Assembly: GCA_021613535.1 (NCBI GenBank)
Contig: CP075495.1
Coordinates: forward strand, 8,060,001 to 8,124,000
From: Adineta vaga
Taxonomy: Eukaryota > Animalia > Rotifera
Direction of reading: 5' to 3'
Length of the DNA stretch: 64,000 bases
The notes under the pieces are model-generated. The model was not told the DNA's origin, did not search any database, and was given only the letters and a program-made list of their open reading frames with translations. A program made the translations under genes and the position numbers. Below, one piece after another: positions 46,684 through 58,485 of this stretch (position 1 is its first letter; every line of letters begins with the position of its first letter).

Positions 46684-47557
46684 TAAGAATGAATGTAAAT
46701 ATCTTTTTGTTTGTCATTATCTTATCTTTATTTCTTACATTGTCACTTGATAAAATTTTAACTTGAAACAAAAAAAAGAAAAAGAAATTACAATATCTTG
46801 CATTTATATGATATTTTTGAAAAAGTGCTTTGCAACAGTTTTAGAAAAAAGAAAACTGTCGATAATCTCAAAGACATATTCCAGAAATGAAGATTATTTA
46901 TTATGTTTTGAACAGATGTTTAGTGTTTTGTTTTTCTTTGTAATTGATTGAAACTTTTAATAGAAATAAACGTCTCGGATCAATAAATATCATTGTTAAT
47001 GTAAGTGGTAAAGAAGTCATTTTAGTTTGTTTTCATAGATGTCATTCGGAATATTTATTAACTCACATTTGCCTTAAGTGTAGCAAAGTTTTCAATAAAT
47101 GTACATTGGTTTCATATTCAATTATTTTAGAATCTTATTCTTTCAACATCTTAATAGATACTTAGATCGAATCGTTTGCAAAATAAGAATAGGAAAAGTA
47201 ACGGAAAATGTTATTTCCTATTATTGCGTTCCTTTAGAATTGATAATAGTTCTGTCCCATGGTACTAAATAAAGATACAATTCTATAGAAATATTTCCTC
47301 CTACCTCTTTTTCTCTCTAAAAATAATTTCCAATGAGTAATAGCTGGATTCAAAAGCTCTTGATACATATAAGATCTTCAGCGACATGTGATCTTTAGCG
47401 TATTTTGATTCACACCAACCTACGATACTAAATAAAGATTGGTATTCATTTTTCTGAAATCTCATCTTTTTGTTTTTCCTATTAGATTTATATTTATATA
47501 TATAAAGGCTGATATAAGAGCCGTTCCGTTTCCCATAACATCGAATATTTACTTTCA

Positions 47558-48011
47558 ATGAATCAGGTAAAGTACATTACGGTCTAGTTGTTGAAAGACG
47601 AACTTATCCCTTAGATTCTATTTTTAGCATAGCATTTCTATATTTTCAACTTCATATCTACGAATGTACATTGTCGTTTTTGTACTCATTATATGTATGA
47701 ATCATCATTATGTATTCGCGAATGATAATTCGAATGAAATGTCTTCGGAAAATGATAATCAAGAGGAAGCATTTGTTTTGAAAAATGCTATACCAGATGA
47801 TATTCAATTCACTCGACGTGGTGTTTGGTCTCGTTTATTTCGACAGGAACATAATCCAACACGAACAAATAATCGTATACATTATTCGCCTACAGCAGCT
47901 GCTCACACTCTTCATACTGGTAAAATTCATATTATACCATTTGATAAACGTACAATTCCGGTTGAGCTTCAAAAAGCTCTTTATGCTCATGGAATCGTAG
48001 GTCGACGATGA
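47558..48011 (+). CDS. Neuropeptide/prohormone precursor A; predicted mature peptide TIPVELQKALYAHGIV-amide
   Basis: Micro-exon MNQ (47558-47566), intron 47567-47627, exon 2 in frame. Hydrophobic signal peptide, acidic spacer, RR and KR sites, terminal G-RR-stop amidation signal. Confidence 0.85.
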
Positions 48012-48343
48012 GATTAACAACATTCTGATAACATATGTCATGTCAATTAATTCATTTTCTTCTCTTATATTCATTAAACAGCAATTTCATGCAGAAAAAA
48101 ATCTTATAATTGTTGTATTCATCGATTAATAAATATATACGGAAGAGTGAATTCATAGCATATTTTCTATTGCAATCTTCGATACATGCTCTTCACACCT
48201 AATGCTGCCCTCTATCTGAGTATGGTATTCATGACAACTCATAAGTTAAAGTTGTAAGAATGGTTGTTGACAGTTCTTCACATATCTACAGTTAGTTTCT
48301 TGCATTTTTTTTGCTACCAAATAGATAAAAATCATTCGCTATA

Positions 48344-50247
48344 ATGCCAGAAAAGTAAATCTTATTTGGTGACATTTTTATTTAATTCTTGTTGAATTTC
48401 ATAGACCAAGATCTCGACCATTAAGTGCGAGTCGTCAACGACGACATAGTAGTCGTCGTGCAAGTTTTAGTGGTAACTTGACTCCGCCAGAAATGATTAC
48501 TAATTCCGAAGAATTAGTACCTGAAAGTACCGTCTATTATGGTGGCTTGGATCTCCGTTCAACCGAAGAAAAACTTCGAAGTTTAGAAAAAGAAATGGAA
48601 CTACGAAAAGATGATTCTACTGTATTTATTTCAAATTATTCCATGGAAAGCATCTTTTATATTATCTATTTTTTTAGCCTGAAGAACATCTACAAGCTCT
48701 TGTGTTAATACAACTGTATACAAGTCTTGAATATGGTGAAGCATCTTTAGAAAATGCTCGTGCTTATTTAAATTTAGGCAAATTTTATTTCGAACAAAGA
48801 AGTAATTTGTTCTTGTCAATTTTTCAAAGAAGAATTTTCTCTTTCTCATTCCATAGATTTATTACCACAAGCTAAAGTTCATATACTGAATGCTCGACAA
48901 ATTCTCGAACAAATGAAAATCTTACCAAAGAATGATCATCTTGTACAAAATTTACTTGCCTATGAAATTTATTTTTTATTAATTAAATATTCTTTACAAG
49001 CTAGACAATACTCCTCTCAACGTGATATTAAAACAAAGAATAAACATATTCTATCAATTGATACAACTCATATCGATCATGATCTTAATCGAATTGAAGA
49101 ATATCTTGAAAAATTACAACCATTAATGAGTTCATCGGATTATGATGAAAAATATCGAGAATTCCTTTTGATTAAATTCGATGTAATTATTAGTAATACA
49201 AAAGAATTTAATGCAGATATATCTGAAATTATCAAAAGTATTCTAGCAATTCTAGACAAATATCCATCAGAAGAACAAATAAGACAAAAAATTGATATCT
49301 ATTTACGTAGTGGATTTTATTTCATTAGTTTTGAACGTAATATTACTGAAGGTTTAAAATATTATAAAGAAGCAGTTGAATTAGCCGAAGAACAAGAACA
49401 ACATGCACCATGCGATGTAAATAAATATCAATTAGGAAATGCTTTATTTCAATGGGGAAGAGCACGTATAAGAGCAGATAAATTAACAGGTAATAGTCTA
49501 ATAGTTACTTGTTGTAAATTGTTAATTATTGATATCATATCTAGATAATACAGAAAGGAAATTGACACGTGCAATTGATATATATAGACAAGTAAATGGA
49601 GAAAATGATAAAAATGTTCTTCGTGTAATCGATGAATTAGCAACTTTCTATACAAAAATGGAAAAATTTCAAGTTTGTCAAGAATATTCTTCGAAAAAAG
49701 AAAGTTTTCTTGTTGTTAATTGTAGGAAGCTTTAAATATTCTTTGTGAAAGTTTACCTGATAGACGAAAGCTATATAGTGAATTTTCTGACGAATTTATT
49801 CAAACCGAATCACGTATTGGTGCTATTTATTTACGTGAATGTGAATATCTTAATGCAGCTGAACATTTCAAAGAAGTATAGCATAAGATTTTATTTTATT
49901 TCACAAATACAATTGTTTTGTTTTAGTGCCTTGAACTTCAAGAATTTGTCTATGGTTCAAAAGATCCACGTACATGTCAAACACGTGATGCACTTGAAAT
50001 TTTGAAGAAGTACGATATTTTTTTTGTTTTCATATAAAATTGAGTATTAATCTTCATCATCTTTGATAGAGATCCAACGGTTTCTCGAACATTTTTCTCT
50101 CGTACACAAGATGGAATTCGTCAAGATCGACCAGCTTTTCGCTATTCAAATAAAGTTTCTCATGATAAGGAAGATCATGATTTATTATTTACTGTAACAA
50201 AAAAACCACCGATCGGTTCCAAAAATTCAAGTTTTATTGATAAATAA
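48344..50247 (+). CDS. Tetratricopeptide-repeat protein (TTC23-like), multi-exon
   Basis: Helical repeats: LEYGEASLENARAYLNLGKFY, LLPQAKVHILNARQIL, GLKYYKEAVELAE, RAIDIYRQVNGEND...DELATFY, CLELQEFVYGSKDPRT. GT-AG exons; stop at 50245-50247. Confidence 0.75.
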
Positions 50248-50335
50248 AAGATGTATTGTTTAACATACATAAATCTTGGTTAGATATATGAAGCATTAAT
50301 GAATATAAATGATAGAAGTATATCTACAATAAAAC

Positions 50336-52782
50336 TCAAATACTATAACGTTCTGGTGCCATTTGAATAAAATCATCAAATATTTGTGGAATTGGATATT
50401 TTGTCAATTCATCAACTGTAGATTGCGATATTGGAAAACCCCAAAATTTAAATAATGGAACTAGATTTTGACCAACTTGATTAGAATACATTTTTATCCA
50501 ATAATCCATTTTGTCTTGATTAGAATCAAGATCTGGCTTTGTATTTTCATATTTGCGAAAAATATCTTTATAACTTTCCCAACCATATTCTCGAACTAAT
50601 TGAGCATAGATAAACAATGCAACACCGGGATTTTCTTTCCATTCATCAAAATTCGAGCCATCTGTTATATATTCTTTTGTTCGAGACAGTTGATCTTTTA
50701 ACCATGAATGTATCCAGGGTTGAAGATGACAAATTTTATCCATAGCATGTAAAGTAAATATATTTACTGTTACTTCACCAGTACCATCAAATGCTAAATA
50801 GACAGAATCAATTTTGCTTAGAAAATAAATGATCGAAAACATACTCCACCAATCTTGTTGCATATTGTGACCAATTTCATGAAATAAACCCCAGGCTCCT
50901 TGTTTCTCTAGTTTCTCACTATTGAATAGAAAATCGTCTGATTTGGGATCACTTACATCCATTTGTGTCACAATTGGATATCCACTATCTACAAAACAAT
51001 TGATTTCTTCTCGTTTTTTATTTTAACAACAAGTCGAACAAGATGAATATCTCTATTAAACTTACGCATATAGCCAACAGATGGTTGTTCATCGCAAACG
51101 ATTCGTTCTCGATGAGTAGGTTTTGTTCCACGTAAATCATGATGTGCTAGAATAACTGTATCCCAAAATTGTAAAGCTCGATCTAATTGAGCAGATGTTA
51201 GATGTACAACACTTTTCGATGGAAGATTAAATACAATATATTTTCCTGCAATATCAGCCCATAGACCTTGTGACTCTGAACGTTTATGATCCCAGGCTTC
51301 AAAACGATTTGAATCCGTTAGATCATATGTTGGTGTTGAAACAACATGATGAAGATTAACTGTAATGGAATTAGATTCACCTTGAGGACTTTGAAGAAAG
51401 AGTAAACCACCAAATGCTGAATTCATTCGTATTTTTTCGGAAGATAATGGTTTACATATGGAAATACAAGGCCAACGGCGAAGTTCATCACAATTCTATT
51501 TATAAAAGTAGATTTCTTTTTTTTTATTGAAAGAGATATAAAGCATACTCCAAGATCATCACTATGACATCCAATTCTAGCTGACCATCCATTAGATCCT
51601 TTCTGTTCTACAACATCAATTTGAATTGGAATACCAGCAACCACATAATATCCTAATAAATGAAGAAAAAAAACTTTTGTTCGATCCAATCTAAATCCTT
51701 CACGACTGATCTTACCAGTACAATACCATTCGCTCGCTTTCGATTCAATATGACATTGTACATTTGTTAAAATAAGTGGTGGTCGATCAAAATCACCAGG
51801 AAAATGTCGGACTCCTAGAATTTAATATCGAACCATTCATTTTCAATTCAATGGAGATATGAAAACCTGGTGCTTTAATTCCTGGTAAACCACACATAAT
51901 GCCACAAATACCAGTTGATTGTTCTCGACAATTTTTATCTCTAATTGGACATGTATTCATTGGAATGATATCTTCATTTGCGCTCATAACAATACTCTGT
52001 AAAGTTTCCATTGGAACTCCTGGTAATGTATCACCTAATTCTTTTACAGCTGATCCAATAATAGCTAAATCTTGTCGATTATTTGGATCACGTGCTAAAT
52101 CTTTGACAACATGATAGACATTTTTAAATTTAACTAAATCTTCTCGAAATTCAATTGGATTAGAACAATTTGCATAATTATCGGTCACTTTTACGCCGAT
52201 ATAATCACAAAAACGAGCAAATGGAAAATCTGACAATAGTTTCCCACTATTTCCTTGTAGCCAACCCCATGCAGTTGTTCCACAGATCAATGCTCCGCCA
52301 CGTTGCAGAAAATCACACTAAAATAAAAAGGAAAAAAATATCAGTCTAATTATCATCGTCGACATGATTCTCGATGTTCTTACTAAACCATTCATAAAAG
52401 TATCAGATTTCTTGTAATGTCCATCCCAAACTAGAATTTTTCCATGTGTAGCTATATCATGCATAGATTTTGCTTCATTAATTGATAAAAATTCTGCTTT
52501 ATGTCCGTGTGCAAGCCATTGTCGACAATTTTCAATAAAACGTCGATTTTTTTCTTCGATATTTAAGAATATTCCTGGATAACCATTATGTGCAAATACT
52601 AAACAACGTCCATGACCAAATCGAGTAGCGACAATAATAACATTATTTGAATCTTCTCCACATAGAACTGCACGAGTATCATTAGTTAATGGAATTAATG
52701 TTCCAGGACAACCAATTTTTTCGAGTGAAGATATTCCATTGAATATGACTTTTGAAACTTGATCAAATTCTTCATCACGCAT
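50336..52782 (-). CDS. TCAF/FAM115-type M60-like (enhancin family) metallopeptidase
   Basis: GHGRCLVFAH, GGALICGTTAWGW, WYCTGYYV, SAFGGLLF, ERIVCDEQPSVGYMHSGYPIV, WGLFHEIGHNMQ...GEVTVNIF and NLVPLFKFWGFPI. Multiple short introns. Confidence 0.9.
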
Positions 52783-53872
52783 GTTTTTATCTTGTAATCA
52801 AAACAAAATCTATCAACGATGTATATAAGTAAGTTGATGTTTCGATATTATGAATCATTCAATGACATTAAACAAATGCACGAGTCGTAGTATCGAGAAA
52901 GAAAAAGAACCATGCAAATATTCAAACAGCATCTGACACATACACGTTGTTTTTTCTTTTCTTCTTTCTTCGAAATCTATTCAATGGGTAACAGCCGACA
53001 TGTAATTCGAGCATTCGTATAAAACAATTATAAATCGAAATTATTCTATCAAATTCTGGTGCTCGAATTCCAGTCTTTTCTTCCCATTACTTATTCATTC
53101 GAGTTGAATAAGTCAATCTAGAATTGAATGAATCAGTATTTCGTATGTGATATATTCATGAAAATATCATTTATCATCCATTAAATGACGACTATTTTTT
53201 CTCGCTTATTAATTGATAAGTTATGGATTATATTGAATAGAATCAATCCTTCATCATCTACTAAGCACCTTGATGGAATGATTATTTGCTAAATCATATT
53301 CAGTGTTGGATAGTAAAAACTATAGTCTGCGATCCAAAGCATCGATTTATCCTTAGTTTCATTATCTTTTCTCACGTAATTCAATGCCGTTTCGTGTATA
53401 GAAGAAAAAGGTGGTGTAGCTTTGTACAAACCTTGTGTTTCGACAAAATATAGTTATACTTGATCAACTCCGGTTGTCATCATTTCCTTAGCAATGTTGA
53501 TAACTCTCATATAGATCAAATTTTGCATGTTTTCTCTTTAATGATTTGTTTCCATGACATCTCCTTTTGAAAACCATTTATTTTTGTTTTTTACGATCAA
53601 AACATAGACTGCAAGTTATGTAATACATACATTTTTTGCCCACGTCTTTCTCAACCTTATTGGAAATAGATTAAACCGTCAACATTCGAGTAAGGTTGAC
53701 TAATGCTAAAGAGTAAATATGGTTTCTTAATGAGCGTATAAAACGTTACGACGTCAAAGTACACAAAACGATGTAAACTACAATGGCGTTTTACTGAATT
53801 TTTGACGTATAAAAGAGCGAGTAAACCGACTATATATTCAAAATGACAAATGAATTTTAATATTATACTCAG

Positions 53873-54186
53873 ATGGCAAACGGTACCTTAGAAGTTACTA
53901 TCGTCGAAGGACGCAATCTTAAAGATTGTAATATAATCACTGAAAATGATGCATATGTGGAAATTTATTTCAATAAAAAATATCAATAACGCACTAGAGT
54001 GATAAAAAATTGCAAGAATCCAGTATGAAATGAATGATTTCAATTTAATGTTTATAAGGGTGATGATACTATTCATTTTGATGTATTTGATGATGATTTA
54101 ATTGGTCGAGATTTCATTGGTAATGGCAAGGTGAAGTTGAAAAATTTTTCCGATGAGAATAAATTTGATGATTGGATCAAATTATT
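53873..54186 (+). pseudogene. Single C2-domain pseudogene, intronless, with three in-frame stops
   Basis: MANGTLEVTIVEGRNLKDCNIITENDAYVEIYFNKKYQ*RTRVIKNCKNPV*NE*FQFNVYKGDDTIHFDVFDDDLIGRDFIGNGKVKL...DDWIKL. Stops at 53987, 54026 and 54035. Confidence 0.85.
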
Positions 54187-54742
54187 TTTAATATTTGTGT
54201 TGTCTAGTTTTATCATTTAATAAAACAAATTTGTACAGCCCAAGTTGAACAATCGTCTGTGTTGTTAGATATAGTTTCTCAATATTTTTTATTGATACAC
54301 TCTAAAAGATTTCTTTCCACATACTGCAGCTGTTGTACTCTCGAATGTCTCAAATATATGACTTCCCTGTCATTTGTTATTACTTTGTAGAAAAATTCGA
54401 TGACACAACAATAGATCATCACATGACATCACAGGATGTTAAGAATAATATGAGTACCTATCACGTCGTAGGAAGATATGATTATATGTGCATGAAAATA
54501 ATAACATTATCGAAATTAAATATTAATTATATGTCTTTAAGAACAAACAGGATGAGAAGGTCGATATGCCTGCGCCTACTCAAATCAAGATGATACTATA
54601 TGATCTGTTTGTAAATAATAAACGGAAGATTTCTATCAAGTTAATTTATCATATTATAGATTTGATTTCGTCTTGAAAGAAAAGGTCATGATTTTGATTA
54701 AACGGCAGATGTTAATTGTCTCTATCACGTTTTTGTCTTATC

Positions 54743-54778
54743 ATCATAGTCATGCAGGCACTACTGCATGACTATGAT
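54743..54778. repeat. Perfect 15-bp inverted repeat with 6-nt spacer
   Basis: ATCATAGTCATGCAG-gcacta-CTGCATGACTATGAT. Confidence 0.9.
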
Positions 54779-56024
54779 AATTACTTAAAATGATTGCATG
54801 AGTGTACATTTAAGATTCATATATAAACACATAAAGAAATTCACTTTTTAACTACCTCTCTATCGTTCAAGATACATTAAACATCATCTTCGTGAAATAT
54901 TCGATAAGAAATCAAAAGTAAGTCCATTATAATTAAGAAGGTGTATAAAAACATGAATATATGCCTGATTAGCTGAGCGACCAACTAGAATTGTAAGTAT
55001 AGGTTATATTATCATGCTAGTTGATGCCTTGTTTGTAAATCCGTATGCCTGATTGCATCCAACCTAAGATGATGCAAAAGAAATTTATTTTTAACCTGTC
55101 TATTAGTAGATATATATATATATAACAAGAAAGACAAATTTGAGAAAATCTAGTGTGTTAAATCATTTTATCAAGAACACAAGTATATAGAAGCAATGAT
55201 CTGATGTCATTTATAGTTTTCGATAAAAAAAGATTGATTGGAAAATAATGTATTTGAACGTCATTACCAGAATTTCTGTTTCTAGTTATCCCTGGAGATG
55301 ACTCTCACATTGTTGAATACCACCCTATTGTTATCGTTAATTTTCTTTAAAAAAAGAAGCAGCTTGTTGAAGGAAATGAGAAATAGAAAAAAACGTCCGT
55401 CTAGAATGTAAACTATATCATTATTCATATGAAATTCTCCAGATAGATTAAATATTGAACTAATGATGATCATTTGTGCATCATCATTCTTTTTGTTTGT
55501 TTGTTTTTTCTCTGTGTTAAATAGAATTGTTATACGAACAAAGAAATTTCATATAAATATATATGCCTTTGTTCACATCTTTTAAGTAAATGGATATATT
55601 CATGAGATGTCGCAAAAAAATTCCATTAATTTTCATGAAATGATCTTCTTTCTTTTAAAAAATTCATAAGATCAAAATCTTTTAGCTATTTGAATCTATG
55701 TGTAGGAGGTTTATGGTAAGTTTTGTAATACTTATATGCGAACATATAAATATATATTCGAATATGTTCATTTTATTCTTGATTAACTTGTCAAAGACGG
55801 TAACATAGTAGTAAACTTTTCTCAATGTCAAAATGCTTGACAGAAACAGAAAAAAGTCAAACACAATTGTGTGCACTGAGAAAGTCGTTTTTTTCCTTTC
55901 AAGAAAAATTTTCACTAACAGTTGAACTCATTTGATATCTAGTTTTCTCTTGATTTAAATTGTCTTTAAATATCATTTTTAGAACTATTTATCACATCTG
56001 TTAAAATCTCTTAATCTTTTATCA

Positions 56025-56515
56025 ATGACTCAGGTAATTTTATAAAGATTTTCCTTTCAATAATCCTATTTATTACATTCTAGTTGAATCATTTCTCTCA
56101 TGTCAATTGTCATTTATTCACTTTATTTGTGGTCATTCTTATTTGTCTCAATCAACATCAAATATCAGCCAATCGATTGAGTAGTAAATCAGATTATGAA
56201 CAACGTTCATTGGTCTATGATGATACATCTGATGAAGACTTAGGCAATAACGATTATCCAATAATGAATACTCGAAATAATGCCTATTTAACTGATTATG
56301 AGGAACCATCTTCTTCGAAACCATGGTCAAACTTATTTCGTCAATATCAGCAAAAATCGATCTATACACCAGCTTATTATTCAAGTCCAAAGTCTGGTTT
56401 TGCTCTACGACGTAGTGATCTTCGTTATATTCCATATCTATCTGCAAAACGTTCAATTCCTATTGAACTACAAAAGGCACTTTTTGCTCATGGAATTGTT
56501 GGTCGTCGACGTTAA
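56025..56515 (+). CDS. Neuropeptide/prohormone precursor B; predicted mature peptide SIPIELQKALFAHGIV-amide
   Basis: Micro-exon MTQ (56025-56033), intron 56034-56083, exon 2 in frame. Signal peptide, acidic spacer, KR site, terminal G-RRR-stop. Confidence 0.85.
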
Positions 56516-57288
56516 AAAAAATCACTTTTTCAATTGACACTATAATAACAAACTAACATGCTTGAATCTTAACATTTTCCTTTTCATTTCTAATGAATTC
56601 AATAAAGAAAATATGCATATGCATAAAAAACACTTCTTCATCTTCTACTTATTGTTCATTTCAAATATCTTCCAAGATATTTCCGATTGCTTCGTTTCAA
56701 CAATTGACAAATAATTGTAAAACATATATATAAAGGTTCTTTTGGACTCGACGAAAATCACATGTTGCATAAATAACTTAGTTTGAAAATATTTTTGAGA
56801 AACCTGTATCATTATAATTTCACGAGGAATTGAACGTGTATGATATGATAAAGGAAAACTATTTTTATTACAGGTTAAAGAATTAGCAGGTATAACTATG
56901 ACATTAGCGATGCAAAATGTTGATGTTGATATATTTTTCAGTTAATTTTCATGTCATTATAACCAGAATTCAAAAAAAGATGTATCAAGATAGAGTAAGA
57001 TAATATCAATTTGATTTAAAGTACTAGCATGATTCTGTATCTATATAATATAGCAACTATCTTTGAATATCTCTGAAATCTTGACCATTAAATTGATTAT
57101 TCGACTCAAATGTCTTTAATCGTATTAACTTGTAATTCAAGTATTTATATCGACGATTAGGTATAAAAATAGAGATTTAAATGGATTCTTTTGTTATCTT
57201 ATATCAATAACTTGTATCTTTATATACAAAACCAATAAAAAAAGCGATACAAATTCACTCGAAAAAAAGTGATAGAAATAGCCTACGC

Positions 57289-58485
57289 ATGAAGCTTCGA
57301 AATTTTCTATTTCGTCGACTTATTTTAAGTCTAATTATTTCGATAAGTTATGCTGATACAAGAAATGATCATGAAATATTTGTTGATAATCTTATGGAAA
57401 GTTATTATGATGATGGAAAAAACGTTCCCGGTGCTTGTGTTCTTGTTATTCATGAAGACAAACCGATCATTCGTCGTTCCTACGGCTTTGCTAATATTGA
57501 ACAAAAGACACGTGTTACATCAATGACAAATTTTCGATTAGCATCATTAACCAAACAATTTACTGCTGCAGTTATATTATTACTCGCAGAAGACAAGAAT
57601 AAAACATTACAATTGGATGATCGAATACGTGAAAAATGGTTGCCATCATTACCTGAAAACACAAAGACAATAACAATTCGTCATTTACTTACCCATACAT
57701 CCGGTTTGATCGATTATGAAGATTACATTCCACCGAATACCAATCCTGATTATCAATTGTCCGATGCTGATGTTCTTGAAATTCTTTCTTCACAAGATCG
57801 AGTATATTTTTCACCACCCGGTTCACGTTACATGTATAGCAATAGTGGTTATGCTTTATTAGCCATTATTATTGAACGAGTATCTGGAAAGCGTTTTGCA
57901 GACTTCTTGCGAGAACGTATCTTTTTGCCGTTACAAATGAAAGAAACATTGGCCTATGAAAAAGGAATATCTACCGTAGCCTATCGTGCTTTGGGATACA
58001 GTAATAACGATCAGTTGTGGATTGAAACCGACCAAAGTCAAACTAGTGCCGTTCTTGGTGATGGTGGTATTTATTCATCAATTGATGATTTAGCTAAATG
58101 GGATACTGCACTATATGATAATCGCTTGTTGAATAATGAATCTTTAAAGTTAGCATTTACGGCAGCAATACGAACTGATGATCCAGCAATTCAATATGGT
58201 ATGGGATGGCGTATAAGTGGAGATATGATCTGGCATTCAGGAGAAACCACTGGATTTCGTAATGTTATTCTGCGCTTTCCTAGACAACGCCTTACTGTTA
58301 TTGTCTTGACTAATCGAAATTCTCCTGCACCCTATCAAACAGCATCAGCGATTGCTTACCGTATAATTTCTACTATAGAATGTGAAAGTACAAATTCGAA
58401 ATCAATCTTAACAAGTTATTCAATAGAATTCATGGTTTATTGGTTTACAGTGTCTTCGTTATATAATTACAAGTTTCATGATTAG
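57289..58485 (+). CDS. Serine hydrolase of the beta-lactamase class C/PBP family, secreted, probably horizontally acquired
   Basis: FRLASLTKQF (SxxK), ITIRHLLTHTSGL, YMYSNSGY (YxN), GDGGIYSSIDDLAKW, YGMGW and WHSGETTGFR (HxG triad). Signal peptide; no introns. Confidence 0.92.
   Translation: MKLRNFLFRRLILSLIISISYADTRNDHEIFVDNLMESYYDDGKNVPGACVLVIHEDKPIIRRSYGFANIEQKTRVTSMTNFRLASLTKQFTAAVILLLAEDKNKTLQLDDRIREKWLPSLPENTKTITIRHLLTHTSGLIDYEDYIPPNTNPDYQLSDADVLEILSSQDRVYFSPPGSRYMYSNSGYALLAIIIERVSGKRFADFLRERIFLPLQMKETLAYEKGISTVAYRALGYSNNDQLWIETDQSQTSAVLGDGGIYSSIDDLAKWDTALYDNRLLNNESLKLAFTAAIRTDDPAIQYGMGWRISGDMIWHSGETTGFRNVILRFPRQRLTVIVLTNRNSPAPYQTASAIAYRIISTIECESTNSKSILTSYSIEFMVYWFTVSSLYNYKFHD

Follow-up and report, generated by a model that had tools for sequence, protein, structure and literature searches.

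What do two short genes on the same strand of the bdelloid rotifer Adineta vaga encode, given that both end in nearly the same 16 residues set between basic processing sites? The genes, called A and B in the following, lie in a window of 64,000 nucleotides (nt) that comprises positions 8,060,001-8,124,000 of contig 2 of the 100.8 Mb six-contig A. vaga assembly. Coordinates given without a contig refer to this window. An earlier, sequence-only reading had taken the genes for a paralogous prohormone pair whose amidated product belongs to no named family. Our analysis makes it likely that both genes, like their two duplicates on contig 5, encode prepropeptides of a single bdelloid family of amidated neuropeptides, referred to below as AHGIV-amides. 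Our best reading is that this family is undescribed in print, new in sequence and ordinary in mechanism. The prohormone part of the earlier reading is supported by a signal-peptide-like start, by the sites flanking the peptide, by the conservation of the 16-mer, by the gene structure, by a spliced transcript of an orthologue and by processing enzymes encoded in the genome.

Architecture and conservation of the precursors

Gene A begins with a 9-nt coding mini-exon, ATGAATCAG (Met-Asn-Gln, 47558-47566, plus strand), followed by the donor gtaaag of a 61-nt phase-0 intron with gt...ag borders (47567-47627). Exon 2 (47628-48011) encodes the remaining signal peptide, the spacer, Lys-Arg (KR, 47946-51), the peptide (47952-47999), a Gly (48000-02), Arg-Arg (RR, 48003-08) and the stop codon (48009-11). 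The predicted mature peptide A is TIPVELQKALYAHGIV-NH2, with a calculated monoisotopic mass of 1750.014. Gene B, also on the plus strand, repeats this layout: the 9-nt coding mini-exon ATGACTCAG (Met-Thr-Gln, 56025-56033) with the donor gtaatt is followed by a 50-nt phase-0 intron (56034-56083) and by exon 2 (56084-56515), which encodes the remaining signal peptide, an acidic spacer containing PWSNLFRQ, KR (56447-52), the peptide (56453-56500) and Gly-RRR-stop (56501-56515). Here the predicted mature product is SIPIELQKALFAHGIV-NH2 (calculated monoisotopic mass 1734.019). The architecture described in the sequence-only reading, i.e. two same-strand genes with a mini-exon for MNQ or MTQ, a phase-0 intron, an acidic spacer and KR-peptide-G-RR(R)-stop, is found in the sequence at precisely these positions. 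Both gene models agree with the A. vaga annotation, in which gene A is I4U23_008266 (UJR26959.1, 130 residues, MNQ plus exon 2) and gene B is I4U23_008269 (146 residues, MTQ plus exon 2); each is labelled 'hypothetical protein'.

The N-termini were assessed with a simple hydropathy computation on the four A. vaga genes of the family (see below). All four possess a 12-residue apolar core with a mean Kyte-Doolittle value of 2.8-3.7, after which a polar stretch ends in [IV]-[SF]-A. For gene A the core is MYIVVFVLIICM with a mean value of 3.14. The signal peptides would end at about position 47720 in gene A (...VFA|ND) and at about 56170 in gene B (...ISA|NR). An in-frame ATG is present in exon 2 of gene A at 47664. 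Exon 2 of gene B contains no ATG ahead of the hydrophobic core, and the mini-exon is therefore needed by gene B. Over their first 30 residues the spacers of A and B are acidic, with 8 D/E versus 1-3 K/R.

The two predicted peptides are identical at 13 of 16 positions, the changes being S/T, I/V and F/Y. Over the 21 codons from KR to GRR the genes differ by 8 silent and 3 non-silent codons, and upstream of KR the proteins share 23% identity. This agrees with what had been claimed before: conservative changes in the peptide, many silent differences and a precursor remainder that can barely be aligned. The same pattern holds for the four A. vaga paralogues, whose 16-mers are 81-94% identical and whose remainders upstream of KR are 10-25% identical, at precursor lengths from 104 to 146 residues. 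For all pairs of paralogues we counted 6-10 silent versus 1-3 non-silent differences within the 21 codons. Since silent differences outnumber non-silent ones, the conservation acts on the protein and not on the DNA.

A wider alignment of 32 sequences provided a mean pairwise identity of 89% within the 16-mer versus 36% upstream of it. The invariant columns comprise P, E, K, A, L, A, H, G and I of the peptide as well as the following Gly donor (G140). Conservation reaches at least 90% at the basic residues on either side, K122 and R123 at the N-terminal and R141 and R142 at the C-terminal flank of the peptide. From the family a peptide consensus of x-I-P-[ILV]-E-L-Q-K-A-L-[YF]-A-H-G-I-V was obtained.

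Four paralogues and their occurrence in bdelloids

The degenerate DNA pattern for QKAL[FY]AHGI had exactly four matches in the 100.8 Mb genome, while the reversed control pattern had none. In addition to A and B, two further family genes (C and D) lie 7.5 kb apart on one strand of contig 5. They start with mini-exons for MAQ and MSK and contain the peptides TIPLELQKALYAHGIV and TIPIELQKALYAHGIV, with GRRR-stop behind each of them. The predicted amidated forms of these two peptides are isobaric, with a calculated monoisotopic mass of 1764.030. The A. vaga family is a quartet of genes, not a pair: both genes of the pair proposed earlier are real, but the actual set contains two more. The 9-nt mini-exon occurs in all four A. 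vaga genes. Of 11 family loci examined, 10 contain it together with a short phase-0 intron, among them loci on contigs with a GC content of 49%, and the homologous intron measured 36-65 nt.

When the translated open reading frames of the window were compared with contig 5, the two regions proved to be collinear blocks. Their common order is an LRR-like gene, precursor A or D, an unnamed gene, a short conserved stretch, precursor B or C and the next gene, and the genes flanking the precursors have 47-55% protein identity between the blocks. The tandem pair is therefore older than the duplication that yielded both blocks, a duplication which is the ancient bdelloid tetraploidy. In agreement with the positions in the duplicated blocks, A and D pair in a maximum-likelihood tree of 82 family members (support 81). 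This tree resolves four clades, each containing more than one genus (support 96 for B, 98 for C, 99 for D and 88 for A); as a quick reconstruction from 146 columns only, it is weak in the deeper forks.

About 80 database relatives and 28 metagenome loci share the C-terminal cassette. Exon 2 alone or full-length database proteins served as search queries, rather than exon 1 joined to exon 2. A word-indexed database search returned 30 relatives, and when a profile hidden Markov model (HMM) of the family was run exhaustively against 1.84 billion representative proteins, 43 matches at E <= 0.001 were obtained. The peptide motif was present in every sequence inspected from the profile search; in one match, of 1395 residues, only the spacer portion of the profile was aligned. 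All named relatives are bdelloids, namely A. vaga, A. ricciae, A. steineri, Rotaria sordida, R. socialis, R. magnacalcarata, Rotaria spp. Silwood1/2 and Didymodactylos carnosus, and they are annotated as hypothetical only. In Didymodactylos the peptide takes the form TIPIEFQKQLYAHG[VI]V. The 28 metagenome loci come from a scan of JGI data; they are of bdelloid type and end in ...HGI[VI]G followed by one to six Arg and a stop wherever the contig is complete.

So far the family is found only in bdelloid rotifers, across Adinetidae, Philodinidae and Didymodactylos. No member was found outside bdelloids among protein representatives and JGI metagenomes, a result that does not extend to the genomes of monogononts and other gnathiferans at the DNA level. 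Two JGI contigs of wetland type (L064 and L065, 48-49% GC) were rejected as chance matches: they carry ELQKALYAHGI inside an unrelated protein of at least 300-430 residues and lack the cassette. An exact ELQKALYAHGI within an unrelated protein calls for caution over searches with the motif only. We also considered two further contigs (L020 and L021, ENA ERZ26165376) as outsiders to the bdelloids. This was discarded, as they share microsynteny (a 538-residue gene, an A-type precursor and an M60 gene) and their M60 gene is closest to that of Rotaria (63%). These contigs belong to a bdelloid-like genome of about 49% GC, compared to about 26-34% at the other loci, and L021 carries a tandem precursor pair 5.2 kb apart.

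Two neighbours of the precursors in the window, an M60-like peptidase gene and an open reading frame of the beta-lactamase family, are part of the contig 2 block only and are absent from the contig 5 block. The M60-like (enhancin/TCAF-like) gene has multiple exons and lies between genes A and B (50336-52782, minus strand). A gene of this type also adjoins the A-type precursor in contig L020 with 49% GC. Directly 3' of gene B there is an intronless open reading frame of 398 residues (57289-58485, plus strand) that belongs to the beta-lactamase/serine-hydrolase family (PF00144, 2e-66). A beta-lactamase-family gene adjoins the B-type precursor at three independent loci (the window, L023 and L029). 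The open reading frame at 57289-58485 could be a horizontally acquired gene.

Expression and predicted processing

Indirect evidence for expression comes from an environmental JGI contig (L027, 3300030743) that is about 93% identical to the genomic contig L029, from the 5' untranslated region to about 25 nt beyond AATAAA. It lacks exactly 52 nt of L029, located between CAG|GTAATC and TTTTAG|TTG, which is the orthologous B-type intron. A second gene on L027 is a continuous ARM-repeat open frame, in which both A. vaga copies have 3-4 short introns. Since the precursor intron and the introns of the ARM-repeat gene are missing, L027 is derived from complementary DNA, and a B-type orthologue is therefore transcribed and spliced exactly as modelled. 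On L027 (1-1586) the spliced precursor transcript is arranged tail-to-tail with the intron-less ARM-repeat transcript. In A. vaga the orthologues of this ARM-repeat gene lie at 2.49 Mb of contig 2 and at 14.79 Mb of contig 5, far from the precursor genes. L027 is probably a chimeric metatranscriptome assembly.

By reading the window we further located candidate signals around both genes, all on the plus strand. A putative TATA box, TATAAA, is found 52 nt 5' of the ATG of gene A (47501-47506), and a TATA-like box, TTTAAATA, may serve gene B from 53 nt 5' of its ATG (55965-55972). Putative poly(A) signals with the sequence AATAAA follow gene A at 48128-48133 and gene B at 56601-56606.

From the architecture of the precursors the following route to the mature product can be proposed. 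The signal peptide, formed by the 9-nt exon and the start of exon 2, would direct the precursor into the secretory pathway, as suggested by the hydrophobic core and by the small residues at -3 and -1. A prohormone convertase (PC) would cut after the nearly invariant K/R-R and at the C-terminal RR(R), after which a carboxypeptidase would trim the basic residues. PAM would then turn the invariant ...Ile-Val-Gly end into ...Ile-Val-NH2. The acidic, fast-evolving spacer would be discarded or used for sorting. The expected product is a single 16-residue peptide of the above consensus, ending in A-H-G-I-V-NH2. Most likely this amidated 16-mer acts as a neuropeptide or hormone, and its receptor is probably a G-protein-coupled receptor (GPCR).

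Enzymes for such a route are encoded in the A. vaga genome. Loci with the P-domain of proprotein convertases (P_proprotein) are present, and 7B2 (Secretogranin_V) occurs at two loci. Two PAM genes were found, the exons of which match the rat PHM (2.8e-11) and PAL (2.3e-29) structures. One of them, with PHM and PAL exons, lies on contig 2 at about 14,644,000-14,646,400 (L033) and the other, likewise with both, on contig 3 at about 13,203,600-13,205,600 (L032). The stronger matches to the copper-monooxygenase model PF01082 did not qualify as PHM: the two best loci and two further ones that we opened are DBH-like genes with DOMON, and PAM was found at weaker matches. In two of these four DBH-like loci a DOMON-type N-terminal exon is visible. 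Copper-monooxygenase loci lie, among other places, on contig 6 at 4738937, on contig 2 at 12936002, on contig 5 at 4056396 and on contig 3 at 9389083. The same two-exon pattern recurs at about eight further PF01082 loci, which would make this an unusually large set.

Relation to known families and biological meaning

When whole precursors and peptide segments were compared with Pfam using hmmscan, no neuropeptide family was returned. Genome searches with individual family models at E <= 10 also gave no match at the family loci. For PDF/PDH, the Pigment_DH model (PF06324) yielded four chance matches in unrelated open frames; the Orexin model (PF02072) had no match anywhere in the genome; for the calcitonin type, Calc_CGRP_IAPP (PF00214) did not match at the family loci; and for CRF/DH44, PF00473 gave three sub-threshold matches elsewhere. 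Allatotropin was rejected on its defining features: it requires 13-14 residues with a G-F-[KR] start and an [RH]-G-[FY]-NH2 end, whereas the family peptide starts with x-I-P and ends with A-H-G-I-V-NH2. A profile search of the PDB with the C-terminal 30 residues provided chance matches only (staphylococcal complement inhibitor, ferritin), and an Atlas search with residues 112-146 alone returned nothing at 0.9 or above. The loose echoes of allatotropin and orexin that the sequence-only reading had noted (A-H-G near the C-terminus, L-Q..L) are not supported: the peptide lacks the defining termini and is not matched by the Orexin HMM. Its statement that no named family fits is upheld by the lack of any matching Pfam neuropeptide model and by published rotifer neuropeptidomes that do not contain the peptide.

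In particular, the precursor is absent from the rotifer neuropeptidomes of the NP-HMMer preprint, both from the Adineta, Rotaria and Brachionus lists and in a word search of all thirteen supplement files, including that for Didymodactylos. This preprint gives a different Adineta PDF candidate. Homology-based surveys report only few families in rotifers and other Gnathifera (PMC6425005; preprint 10.1101/2024.07.20.604414), the AHGIV-amide family in none of them, and the peptide string was not found in the published literature searched.

How the family compares with known systems depends on whether layout or sequence is considered. With PDF/cerebrin it shares a small precursor with a signal peptide, a non-conserved associated peptide, KR and a single C-terminal amidated peptide of 16-18 residues followed by Gly and basic residues. 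This layout is common to other families as well and is therefore not diagnostic. By eye the E-L-x-x-x-L-[LY] spacing is also shared, whereas the I-P start and the A-H-G-I-V-NH2 end differ from the N-S-E-L-I-N-S...A-NH2 of PDF. DH31/calcitonin precursors resemble the family in KR-peptide-G-RRR(R) near the C-terminus and, by eye, in a T-[IV]-x-[IF]-x-L start; the family peptide has half the length of the DH31 peptide and does not end in G-L-A-A-A-N-F-x-G-G-P-NH2. Allatotropin and orexin are amidated peptides too, with A-H-G recalling the ends of molluscan allatotropins and L-Q..L being as in orexin-B, but the arthropod allatotropin precursors of the NP-HMMer supplement, which include those of Tribolium and Daphnia, hold the peptide in their N-terminal half with a long tail behind it, in contrast to its C-terminal position here. 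All these resemblances to PDF, DH31 and allatotropin/orexin extend over 4-5 residues by eye and fail the defining termini of those families. Like other lineage-restricted (orphan) proneuropeptides of spiralians, to which they belong in kind, the precursors are short, poorly conserved except for the peptide, missed by homology surveys and annotated as hypothetical. They differ from these in having a single peptide copy instead of repeats, four ancient paralogues with virtually the same peptide and a conserved 9-nt first coding exon.

Among its neighbours in a protein language model the gene B protein has neuropeptide precursors, with DH31 at 0.91 and furthermore CAPA, NPFF, 26RFa, CCK and PDH, and its Atlas model is unstructured (predicted local distance difference test score 0.52). 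Some observations weigh against the neuropeptide interpretation or leave part of it unaccounted for. In the language-model comparison 155 of 256 features are shared, fewer than is typical for true members of a family; given this value and several unrelated neighbour families, the similarity supports the class only. The site before the peptide is not dibasic in a few members (KL, KS, KN, TR or QR). Moreover, a model in which the peptide alone is conserved leaves two elements unexplained: a spacer motif W-S-x-L-F-[RH], to which RR is prefixed in type A, and [IV]-x-[IVY]-[IV]-P-[FY], which directly adjoins KR on its N-terminal side. These elements fall within 47820-47850 and 56322-56350 of the window and about columns 90-100 and 125-135 of the alignment. 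They could represent a second peptide, or a motif for sorting or convertase recognition.

These points bear on the alternatives to be considered. It is unlikely, in our judgement, that the AHGIV-amides belong in strongly derived form to a bilaterian family already known, which would leave the mechanism unchanged. Candidates would be a peptide of the allatotropin/orexin type, or a secretin-type GPCR ligand similar to PDF/cerebrin or to DH31/calcitonin. Arthropod PDF precursors have the same layout with a single C-terminal peptide. So do the DH31 precursors in the NP-HMMer supplement, in which a single peptide, set between KR and G plus polybasic residues, occupies the extreme C-terminal end, and DH31 precursors form the nearest language-model clusters at the above value of 0.91. 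By eye, E-L-x-x-x-L-Y can be set beside S-E-L-L-S-S-L-Y from the 'PDF' that the preprint lists for A. ricciae, and T-[IV]-x-[IF]-x-L-x-[KR] beside the N-terminus of DH31. Such matches by eye span only 4-5 residues, however, and neither hmmscan nor the Pigment_DH, Orexin, Calc_CGRP_IAPP and CRF models connected any of the four loci to a family. Sixteen residues ending in I-V-NH2 also contrast with the 31 residues and G-P-NH2 end of DH31, with the G-F...[RH]-G-[FY]-NH2 of allatotropin and with the 18 residues of PDF, and Adineta already has its separate PDF candidate. We give little chance to the idea that an ancient signalling system of bilaterians is represented in Gnathifera by the AHGIV-amides, most plausibly as short PDF-like or DH31-like ligands for a secretin-type GPCR that have been retained in four copies from a time before the bdelloid genome duplication. 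If it were true, an apparent gap in the rotifer neuropeptide complement would be filled and an orphan spiralian receptor group would gain a ligand.

A signal peptide and dibasic processing are common to many secreted peptides of non-neuronal origin, such that the product might instead be an antimicrobial or defensive peptide or a factor associated with glands or eggs. This is improbable: host-defence peptides usually evolve fast, whereas bdelloid families share an almost unchanged 16-mer. With a low helical hydrophobic moment (0.07-0.13, which 71-92% of shuffles equal or exceed) and a net charge of about +1, this peptide is not of the cationic amphipathic kind. One amidated C-terminal copy, together with the 7B2/PC/PAM machinery, is furthermore the neuroendocrine pattern. 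Least probable is a small secreted protein that stays uncleaved and whose conserved C-terminus is a binding or retention motif. It would be in line with the conservation that reaches a few residues 5' of KR and with the conserved W-S-x-L-F of the spacer. The rest of the protein, however, is just 10-25% identical among paralogues that range from 104 to 146 residues, the Atlas model is unstructured, and, besides amidation and trimming, no obvious role can be seen for an invariant Gly with 2-3 Arg and a stop behind it. We thus favour prepropeptide genes of an amidated bdelloid neuropeptide family.

Gnathifera, rotifers included, are the least sampled spiralians with respect to peptidergic signalling and have been called 'the next frontier' (Thiel et al. 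2021, PMC8557429). The 16-residue peptide is easily synthesised, which would permit its direct use in receptor deorphanisation and in behavioural assays. Being nearly unchanged in four paralogues across three bdelloid groups, it must do something important in these animals, which are known for their desiccation tolerance and asexuality.

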